Shown piece after piece: positions 7,981 through 9,381 of a stretch of DNA of 64,000 nucleotides; position 1 is the stretch's first letter; each line of letters starts with the position of its first letter. The notes below the pieces were generated by a model. It made no database searches. It saw nothing but the letters and a program-made list of their open reading frames with translations, and had not been told where the DNA came from. A program made the translations under genes and the position numbers. Source of the stretch: Macrostomum hystrix. Lineage: Eukaryota; Animalia; Platyhelminthes. The DNA is taken from positions 930,001 to 994,000 of the forward strand of contig CATNEN010000034.1 of NCBI GenBank assembly GCA_950097015.1, in the 5' to 3' direction.

Positions 7981-9381
7981 ATGTGTCAAGGCCGTCAAAC
8001 CTGTCGGCGTCTGACTAGCTCAGACTTGGACGCCGCCAAGCGCCGGCCGGGTAACTGCGTCCTCATCATCGACGGCCGGGCCTACGATGTGGCCAATTTC
8101 ATGCTGCGACATCCTGGCGGGGCCCTGGCCCTGGAGAACTGTCGCGGCCAGGACGCAAGCGTCCAGTTCAGCATGTACCATCCGGACTTTGTTAGAAAAT
8201 TCTTGCCAGCCTATTGCATTGGCCGTCTAGACGAAGATAAATGCATTGAGAATGTTGCAATTAACGGCGACGTCAAGCAGCAGCAGCAGCAGCAGAGTGA
8301 AATTGTTCGTGATTATTTTGCCCTACGCGAACGCTTCCACCGGCTGGGCCTATTCAACAGCAACCCGGCCTGGGAGCTGCGCCTGGTGCTGCGTATTCTC
8401 TGCCTGCTGGCTGCATCCGTGGCCTGCGTCCTCTGCGCCCCCACCGACGCCTGGCCAATCCGGGTCGTCCTGGCCGGCATCCTGATGGGCATCTACTGGC
8501 AACAGCTGGCCTTTGTTGGCCACGACCTCGGCCACACGGCCGTCACCCACTGCCGCCTCACCGACCACCGCGTGGCCGCCTTCCTCGGCAATGCCCTGCT
8601 CGGCATCAGCATCGGCTGGTGGAAGCTGAATCACAACACCCACCATCTGGTGACTAACTCTGTGGTTGACGATCCGGACATTCAGCACATGCCGCTGCTT
8701 GCCGTCAGTGACGAATTCTTCGACTGTCCGATCTCCACCTTCTACGATGGGAAGCGCAAGCCGTTCTTCCGTCTGGCTATGCGGATCCAGCACCTGCTGT
8801 TCTACCCCGTGATGTGCGTGGCCAGATTCTACCTGTACGTGCGCGGAGTCGAACACCTCATTGTGATGAACCAGCCCCGTGAGCGGCGCCTGTTCCAGGT
8901 AGCCGAGCTAATCTCGCTGTTCACCTTCTTTGCCTGGTTCCTGATCCTGGCCTGCCAGCTGCCCAGCTGGCCGCAGACCCTGGCCTTCATCCTGCTCTGC
9001 CACGCTGTCTCCGGTGTTCTGCACGTCCAGATCTGCATCTCGCACTTTCCAATGTCCGTCTGCGACTACAAAACCGGATTGGGCACCGCCGACTCGGACG
9101 ACGGCGGGCATTTCATTCGCTCTCAGGTTGCCTCAACTATGGACGTGTCCTGCCCCACCTGGATGGACTGGTTCCACGGCGGACTGCAGTTCCAGCTGGA
9201 GCACCACCTGTTTCCCCGGCTGCCAAGGCATCACCTGAGAGCCGCTGTGCCGCATGTTAAAGAGTTCTGCGACAAGCACGGCTTGAAATATGTTAGCCTG
9301 AGCTTCCTGCAGGCTAACAAGGCTCTGTATTGCCGACTGCGCGATGTGGCGGCTAAAGCTGCCGATTGGAGGCCTGAGTAG
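7981..9381 (+). CDS. Intronless cytochrome-b5-fusion front-end desaturase, sphingolipid delta-8 desaturase-like (466 aa)
   Basis: Cytochrome b5 HPGG motif, three His boxes (HDLGH, HNTHH, QLEHH) and hydrophobic transmembrane stretches, all in a single uninterrupted ORF from ATG to TAG. Confidence 0.95.
   Translation: [466 protein letters not shown]

Follow-up and report, generated by a model that had tools for sequence, protein, structure and literature searches.

An intronless, trans-spliced desaturase gene of the sphingolipid delta-8 type in the flatworm Macrostomum hystrix

Which kind of desaturase is encoded by an intronless gene in the genome of the flatworm Macrostomum hystrix, and how did an animal come to carry it? 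The gene lies at 7981..9381 of a 64,000-nucleotide stretch of genomic DNA (hereafter the window; contig CATNEN010000034.1, positions 930,001 to 994,000 of the forward strand, assembly GCA_950097015.1), and coordinates given without a contig name refer to this window. An initial annotation, made from the letters alone, described a single-exon desaturase in an animal genome with motifs closer to the sphingolipid delta-8 desaturases (SLD) of plants and fungi than to vertebrate FADS1/2, offered horizontal acquisition or retention of an ancient lineage as its origin, and remarked that the corresponding animal enzymes are poorly known. The host is indeed an animal, and the remark agrees with the published record: in the words of Surm et al. 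2018 (PMC6010785), sphingolipid desaturases of the Fads-like kind “have yet to be identified in metazoan taxa”, and the literature still places SLD8s in plants and fungi only (10.1101/2023.05.16.541044).

The sequence at 7981..9381 (+) is an uninterrupted open reading frame (ORF) of 466 amino acids plus stop, with an ATG start and zero internal stops. The single exon is confirmed by transcript contigs, which run along the frame without joints, and all motifs quoted in the initial annotation are present in the translation. Pfam assigns residues 20-84 to Cyt-b5 (PF00173, 1.2e-14) and residues 162-439 to FA_desaturase (PF00487, 4.6e-33), the latter with identical limits in a genome-wide scan, while matches to solved structures in the PDB cover cytochrome b5 domains only. 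The protein carries the features by which cytochrome-b5-fused front-end desaturases are recognised, namely an N-terminal Cyt-b5 domain with HPGG, and HX3H, HX2HH and QX2HH boxes. Residues H44, P45, G46, G47 and H67 of the heme-binding domain, and H181, D182, G184 and H185 of His box 1, are unvarying in alignment A1. The poly-Gln stretch between the domains is the sole part common to unrelated contigs. The features of the gene are as follows.

7817..7822 (+): trans-splice acceptor tttcAG, from the genome sequence; contigs of runs X5 and X6 begin matching at 7822
7823..7980 (+): 5′ untranslated region (UTR), from collinear transcript contig coverage
7981..9381 (+): single-exon coding sequence (CDS) of the SLD-type cytochrome-b5-fused front-end desaturase, from the ORF, Pfam, the tree and transcript contigs
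8038..8232 (+): cytochrome b5 heme-binding domain, residues 20-84, with conserved His67, from PF00173, PDB matches and A1
8110-8121 (+): HPGG, residues 44-47, from A1
8275..8307 (+): poly-Gln inter-domain linker, low-complexity and of a length unlike that in M. lignano, from the translation and A1
8464..9297 (+): FA_desaturase domain, residues 162-439, from PF00487
8521..8535 (+): His box 1, HDLGH, residues 181-185, from A1 and the motif table
8632..8646 (+): His box 2, HNTHH, residues 218-222, in SLD-type context, from A1 and the motif table
9193..9207 (+): His box 3, QLEHH, residues 405-409, the Gln variant diagnostic of front-end desaturases, from A1 and the motif table
9382..10508 (+): 3′ UTR, at least ~1.1 kb, from transcript contigs

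Two other frames close to the gene were considered and rejected as genes. An antisense ORF of 168 amino acids (8350-8856) is a by-product of GC-rich codons, and a minus-strand ORF of 523 amino acids (5971-7542) is a translated 32-bp tandem repeat.

Similarity searches place the protein with the SLDs. Homology statements here rest on the best 120 of >2,200 matches, most of them without names. The top BLASTP match is a hypothetical protein of Macrostomum lignano (81% identity), followed by one relative at 63%, and the next matches listed fall to 36-43% identity over the full length. Named SLD-type relatives among those listed share 36-40% identity (E ~1e-100 to 1e-107) and include a Klebsormidium ‘Sphingobase-D8 Desaturase’, monocot and eudicot proteins named ‘delta(8)-fatty-acid desaturase 2-like’, and a ‘fatty acid/sphingolipid desaturase’ from the chytrid Gonapodya; ‘Delta(8)-fatty-acid desaturase’ is the name under which databases list plant SLD. 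Diatom, haptophyte, thraustochytrid and syndinian proteins are also listed, and the animal matches come from Nematostella, corals, the jellyfish Sanderia, Hydractinia and Trichoplax. Searching with a profile of the animal sequences added more cnidarians and no further named bilaterians among the matches listed. Against proteins of its own genome the query scores far lower: 29% identity (3e-50) to a delta-10-type protein, and 30-33% (1e-8 to 1e-13) to single exons of FADS-type genes.

The surroundings of the histidine boxes separate the same groups. In a motif table, the query and all SLD-type sequences have characteristic motifs that begin with WWK..HN.HH...N.... and end with (L/V/I)(P/A)R; FADS-type sequences have HYQHH or HYLHH followed by SKPN, and FTGHLN(F/Y); and the delta-10 type has HDFMH and HIEHH. 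The SLD-type context of His boxes 2 and 3 is common to the query and to Klebsormidium, Ananas, Gonapodya, Nematostella, Trichoplax and Hydractinia, and is missing from the FADS-type and delta-10-type paralogs.

We inferred a maximum likelihood tree of 60 rows (LG+C20+F+G4, with ultrafast bootstrap and SH-like approximate likelihood ratio test, SH-aLRT), in which the SLD labels are database names rather than verified characterised sequences. The query lies within a 55-row SLD-type clade, split 100/100 from the delta-10-type clade; as it has QLEHH and sits outside that second clade, it is not a delta-10-type protein. One further row, from a single 158-residue exon of a FADS-type gene, received an end branch of 10 and was drawn beside the long Macrostomum branch; this was judged an artefact and the row was dropped. 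In a feature search of the Atlas, clusters named ‘Delta(8)-fatty-acid desaturase’ and ‘Fatty acid/sphingolipid desaturase’ came out on top. By these sequence comparisons the query is a member of the SLD-type clade of plants, algae, chytrids, Cnidaria and Trichoplax, as its motifs had suggested at first reading.

The Atlas cluster at rank 3 (score 0.97; 536 residues, Cyt-b5 and FA_desaturase) draws most often on the phylum Chordata, and chordate relatives of the SLD-type clade or of another front-end type might be among its members.

A genome scan revealed four other front-end-type genes in M. hystrix. Two of these form an inverted pair on contig C38, at 16051670-16052806 (+) and 16054580-16055713 (-), and encode near-identical, intronless cytochrome-b5-fusion desaturases (ORF 1264-2709 of locus L002 and ORF 1429-2808 of locus L003) with the boxes HDFMH, HYVHH and HIEHH. 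Their best named matches are annotated ‘sphingolipid 10-desaturase’, at 42-51% identity, in Lingula, Priapulus, Branchiostoma, Owenia, Ciona, Styela and Convolutriloba, with M. lignano at 77%. The delta-10-type family seems to occur widely among marine bilaterians and, as far as the literature we found goes, is uncharacterised in animals. The other two genes are multi-exon and of canonical metazoan FADS1/2 type (contig C12, 1104603-1107973 (-); contig C38, 24194087-24197655 (-)). The first of them has a tandem-repeat-filled intron that stays in frame, such that a 507-residue ORF reads through it; in the second, the third His box (QIEH|H) is interrupted by an intron. Beyond the front-end desaturases, three DEGS-type loci (C1:15842701, C38:6040946 and C39:7983136), each with the Lipid_DES N-terminal motif and FA_desaturase, represent delta-4 sphingolipid desaturases. 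A multi-exon gene of the CMAS methyltransferase family on contig C1 (23037616-23037936 (-); PF02353 at 64 bits on a single exon; with the motifs QHYEVPTGFF and VLDMGCGWG) may encode a sphingolipid C9-methyltransferase.

The window gene is transcribed, and its mRNA bears the worm's own mark. One study supplies two transcript contigs (2711 and 2735 nt, each from a different run) that are collinear with 7822-10508 and 7822-10532, with zero joints and zero gaps. Both begin with 24 extra 5′ bases, CTGCGAAGACTCAATTTATTGCAT. Together with the next G, CTGCGAAGACTCAATTTATTGCAT is the 3′ part of the 35-nt Macrostomum spliced leader (SL) CGGTCTCTTACTGCGAAGACTCAATTTATTGCATG (PMC8629364). The leader's last G falls on the genomic G at 7822, and the joining AG lies 159 nt upstream of the ATG. 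From the tttcAG acceptor and the collinear, SL-bearing contigs it follows that the worm's own machinery trans-splices the mRNA, whose UTRs and CDS are intron-free. Transcription is judged here from the SL-bearing contigs and not from library labels, no run being recorded as RNA; in runs of a second study, pieces of the gene occur at full identity. The 3′ end of the transcript is hidden, because the contigs end within a 35-bp tandem array (10444-10747).

The 24-mer of the leader has 32 occurrences in the M. hystrix genome, partly in regular arrays, compared with 0 for a control. On the small contigs C15, C17 and C42 these 3′ 24 nt recur at a regular spacing of ~11.6-11.7 kb (for example C17:2766, 14411, 26056 and 37701), which looks like SL RNA genes within a longer tandem unit.

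The gene has an ortholog in M. lignano (81% identity), which is also a single exon and is present on two contigs, and an upstream gene of 675 amino acids in M. lignano matches 1196-2735 of the window, with order and strand conserved. Between the two orthologs dN is 0.12 and dS 0.97, giving a dN/dS of 0.124. GC content at third codon positions (GC3) is 0.76 in the desaturase gene and 0.67-0.77 in other host coding sequences. Neither a foreign composition nor a missing host signal, such as horizontal acquisition might leave, was seen in GC3, SL trans-splicing or synteny. The gene is native to M. hystrix, expressed and under purifying selection, and its inheritance within Macrostomum has been vertical from the split of M. 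hystrix and M. lignano onward, if not for longer. We found no paper naming the M. lignano ortholog or linking Macrostomum with this desaturase gene.

The contrast with multi-exon neighbours drawn in the initial annotation was checked for part of the neighbourhood. The upstream gene falls into at least four separate blocks matching its M. lignano ortholog, within 1196-2735, a PKC-like exon lies at 32122-33543, and genes of this assembly (220,453,370 bp in 42 contigs) have 6 exons on average in the published account (PMC10468722). Intronlessness is not unique to the window gene, however, since the two delta-10-type paralogs on contig C38 are single ORFs as well.

Of the two origins initially proposed, we slightly prefer retention, in which the gene came down from the animal ancestor and was lost elsewhere, to an old transfer; the former is roughly an even proposition, and the latter a serious possibility that falls short of that. 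Such a transfer would have brought the gene from a protist or alga, for example prey, into the macrostomid lineage before M. hystrix and M. lignano split, followed by domestication. Several observations fit it. The gene has zero introns, whereas the animal SLD-type orthologs have one (Nematostella, near residue 118) or two (Hydractinia, near 113-123 and 188; Trichoplax, both short); the first introns of Nematostella and Hydractinia may, on approximate mapping, coincide in position, between the cytochrome b5 domain and the desaturase domain. Only Cnidaria, Trichoplax and Macrostomum represent animals among the named SLD-type matches listed, the bilaterians that carry the delta-10 type not being listed, and all bilaterian Fads lay outside the SLD-type clade in the work of Surm et al. 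2018 (PMC6010785). The free trees, too, put Macrostomum apart from other animals. M. hystrix, M. lignano and the relative at 63% make up a clade with 100/100 support and a long stem (1.29 substitutions per site), whose only sister in the 60-row tree is a sequence from a GC-rich metagenome contig (GC 63-72%; 89/87). After removal of five long or unknown rows, the Macrostomum clade moved beside an Amoebophrya-containing group (75/89). Among the close relatives, P0002 and P0026 trace to runs SRR30276804 and ERR6349633, respectively, and neither of their contigs has the spliced leader at its start; P0007 lies on a GC-rich metagenome contig.

Other observations speak against transfer. No placement of the Macrostomum clade is strongly supported, its position varies with sampling, and the backbone of the tree is a polytomy. 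Cnidaria form their own clade (99/97) with Trichoplax outside it, and because Trichoplax fails to join Cnidaria the tree is without power at this depth, even for animal relationships that are not in dispute. Approximately unbiased (AU) tests, on groups named before the trees were seen, rejected neither Macrostomum with Cnidaria (p=0.316) nor Macrostomum with Cnidaria and Trichoplax (p=0.103). Lack of introns is weak evidence for transfer, because the delta-10-type paralogs, which have clear bilaterian orthologs, are also intronless, and intron loss is common here. The native codon composition, the conserved synteny and the SL trans-spliced mRNA count against transfer as well, and the gene's apparent absence from other bilaterians was judged from the best 120 of >2,200 matches. 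A recent transfer from diatom food was rejected, diatom sequences being only 37-39% identical and forming a separate clade.

What would the enzyme do? We consider it somewhat probable, from sequence, that the window gene encodes a native, functional di-iron front-end desaturase of the endoplasmic reticulum (ER) membrane that acts at the delta-8 position of the long-chain base of ceramide. Electrons would pass from NADH-cytochrome b5 reductase to the heme of the fused b5 domain, and from there to a di-iron centre held by the eight histidines of HDLGH, HNTHH and QLEHH; the last of these putative iron-binding boxes begins with Gln, as in all front-end desaturases. The di-iron centre would take two hydrogens from C8-C9 of the ceramide sphingoid base, yielding 4,8-sphingadienine-type lipids, and the two delta-10-type paralogs could carry these 4,8-dienes on to 4,8,10-trienes.

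A long-chain base is favoured as substrate because the protein belongs to the SLD clade and its motif contexts are near-identical to those of named SLDs, because two canonical FADS-type genes can cover acyl delta-5/delta-6 chemistry, because two delta-10-type genes, three DEGS-type loci and a CMAS-family gene co-occur in the genome, and because invertebrates contain d18:2(4,8) bases as well as plain and 9-methylated 4,8,10-triene bases. Marine invertebrates are on record as having di- and tri-unsaturated long-chain bases for which no enzymes are known (PMC8228791; PMC4440215).

Several points weigh on the other side. Regiospecificity and head-group specificity are not readable from sequence in cytochrome b5 fusion desaturases (PMC5037126; PMC4440215). 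In plants, delta-6 acyl-lipid desaturases have their origin within the SLD clade, and a Malania ‘acyl-lipid (9-3)-desaturase-like’ sequence lies among the SLD2-like sequences of our tree; because members of the clade switched to acyl-lipid delta-6 activity in plants, we can only infer the delta-8 function of the window gene. The activity is a prediction for the Macrostomum protein and for any animal ortholog alike, and the fact that the SLD labels in the tree are database names counts against it too. Function may also have drifted, because the Macrostomum stem is long, and the SLD-type and delta-10-type proteins need not work as a pair, because many bilaterians that carry the delta-10 type are not among the SLD-type matches listed.

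These points lend some weight to a front-end fatty-acyl desaturase (delta-6, -5, -4 or acyl delta-8) that would act on acyl-lipids or acyl-CoA and help to make polyunsaturated fatty acids (PUFA), a reading that we nevertheless regard as doubtful. Several matches of the same clade are labelled by JGI ‘acyl-lipid Delta6-acetylenase / acyl-lipid (9-3)-desaturase’, a plant delta-6-like sequence is nested among the plant SLDs in the tree, similarity has been called no guide to function in cytochrome b5 fusion desaturases (PMC4440215), and Surm et al. took the cnidarian relatives as possible Fads (PMC6010785). Set against this, the genome already holds two canonical metazoan FADS-type genes, the His-box contexts agree with those of named SLDs nearly residue for residue, and the leading Atlas clusters are delta-8/sphingolipid desaturases. 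Should the product prove to be an acyl-lipid desaturase, the window gene would still be a non-FADS front-end desaturase in a bilaterian.

If the delta-8 activity on long-chain bases is taken as the working assumption, a wider picture can be sketched, tentatively: Macrostomum may possess a full toolkit for polyunsaturated sphingoid bases, with delta-4 desaturases of DEGS type, the SLD-type delta-8 enzyme, two delta-10-type enzymes and possibly a C9-methyltransferase of the CMAS family, and the window gene might then be the first bilaterian delta-8 long-chain-base desaturase to be identified.

It is very improbable that the protein is a divergent member of the metazoan FADS1/2/3 clade, an outcome that the initial annotation had named as one that would speak against it. 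FADS1/2/3 are acyl-CoA delta-5/delta-6 desaturases, FADS3 being a delta-14Z sphingoid-base desaturase. They share with the query an architecture of fused cytochrome b5, three His boxes with QxxHH and a location in the ER membrane. The true FADS-type genes of the genome, on contigs C12 and C38, are multi-exon and have HDFGH/HDYGH, HYQHH/HYLHH and FTGHLN(F/Y) contexts, that is H(F/Y)(Q/L)HH around the second box; the query has none of the FADS contexts, is matched by the FADS-type exons at only 30-33% and is much closer to SLDs, to which every strong match listed belongs. The phylogeny envisaged at the outset was realised for SLD-type against delta-10-type proteins, and FADS was compared through motifs and per-exon BLASTP rather than in a joint tree with full-length FADS; by motif contexts, per-exon scores and position in the SLD-type clade alike, no nesting within FADS was observed.

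That contamination, faulty assembly or a dead retrocopy accounts for the gene can practically be dismissed, for although it is intronless, has tandem repeats on its flanks and comes from an animal fed on diatoms in the laboratory, it sits ~0.94 Mb into contig C34 of a 42-contig assembly with animal genes around it and has a dN/dS of 0.12, and all three are excluded because its transcript bears the worm's own spliced leader and its synteny with M. lignano is conserved.

Among known systems, the closest parallels are plant SLD1/SLD2 (EC 1.14.19.29) and the Klebsormidium homolog. The Macrostomum protein resembles them in its N-terminal b5 domain with HPGG, its HDxGH, HNxHH and QxEHH boxes, its length (~450 amino acids), the contexts WWK..HN.HH...N....DPD(I/V)QH.P.FAVS and WFHGGLQFQ(V/L), and 39-40% identity over the full length. 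It differs in its animal host, the poly-Gln linker, a short insertion before His box 3, a long branch and an activity that is predicted from sequence. In algae, Thalassiosira pseudonana TpDesB and Ostreococcus tauri SLD8 are reported as characterised, TpDesB preferring dihydroxylated bases and yielding the E isomer (10.1101/2023.05.16.541044); this is the chemistry of the invertebrate base d18:2(4E,8E). A Thalassiosira homolog, P0099, which may be TpDesB itself, falls in the same clade in sequence searches (39% identity, E 7e-106). The Macrostomum clade is not sister to diatom sequences in the trees.

The nearest animal counterparts are the ‘clade A’ Fad-like genes of cnidarians (Surm et al. 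2018, PMC6010785), together with the Nematostella, coral, Sanderia, Hydractinia and Trichoplax homologs, which belong to the same SLD-type clade at 37-39% identity and are uncharacterised. Surm et al. 2018 reported that the cnidarian genes cluster with plant sequences and are possibly the first metazoan Fads-like sphingolipid desaturases, with no bilaterian member (PMC6010785). In contrast to these genes, which have 1-2 introns and form a 99/97 clade, the gene of Macrostomum has zero introns, occupies a long branch and is not demonstrably sister to them. The ‘sphingolipid 10-desaturase’ type, finally, is likewise a cytochrome b5 fusion for long-chain bases, occurring twice, without introns, in the M. 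hystrix genome; it differs from the query in forming a separate clade (100/100), in its HIEHH third box and HDFMH first box, and in an identity of 29%. The type is named after the T. pseudonana enzyme of Michaelson et al. 2013, as cited in PMC4440215.

The window gene appears to be the first bilaterian member noted of the SLD-type clade, which in published work had been confined, among animals, to Cnidaria, and it bears on how animals lost or regained the set of front-end desaturases that their ancestor had. Its interest is also biochemical. Bases of the 4,8-sphingadienine and 4,8,10-sphingatrienine types have long been known in sea cucumbers, starfish, ascidians, anemones, scallops and squid. 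To our knowledge there is no characterised animal enzyme for the delta-8 or the delta-10 step. Being intact, expressed, under purifying selection and of SLD type, the window gene is a clean candidate for the delta-8 step in animals. Macrostomum is an organism in which RNA interference and transgenesis work, and the delta-10-type and DEGS-type partners reside in the same genome; if the toolkit proposed above is real, the enzymology of the invertebrate 4,8-diene and 4,8,10-triene bases becomes directly testable.

Elsewhere in the window, tandem arrays flank the desaturase gene at 3473-5504 and 6036-7364 (both with 32-bp units), 10444-10747 (35 bp) and 11507-11993 (22 bp), and the strong GC and AT skew of the window at 4-8 kb stems from such arrays. 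Further downstream, at 32122-33543 (-), an open exon of 473 amino acids marks a PKC-like gene, as it encodes two C1 domains and the greater part of a protein kinase domain.

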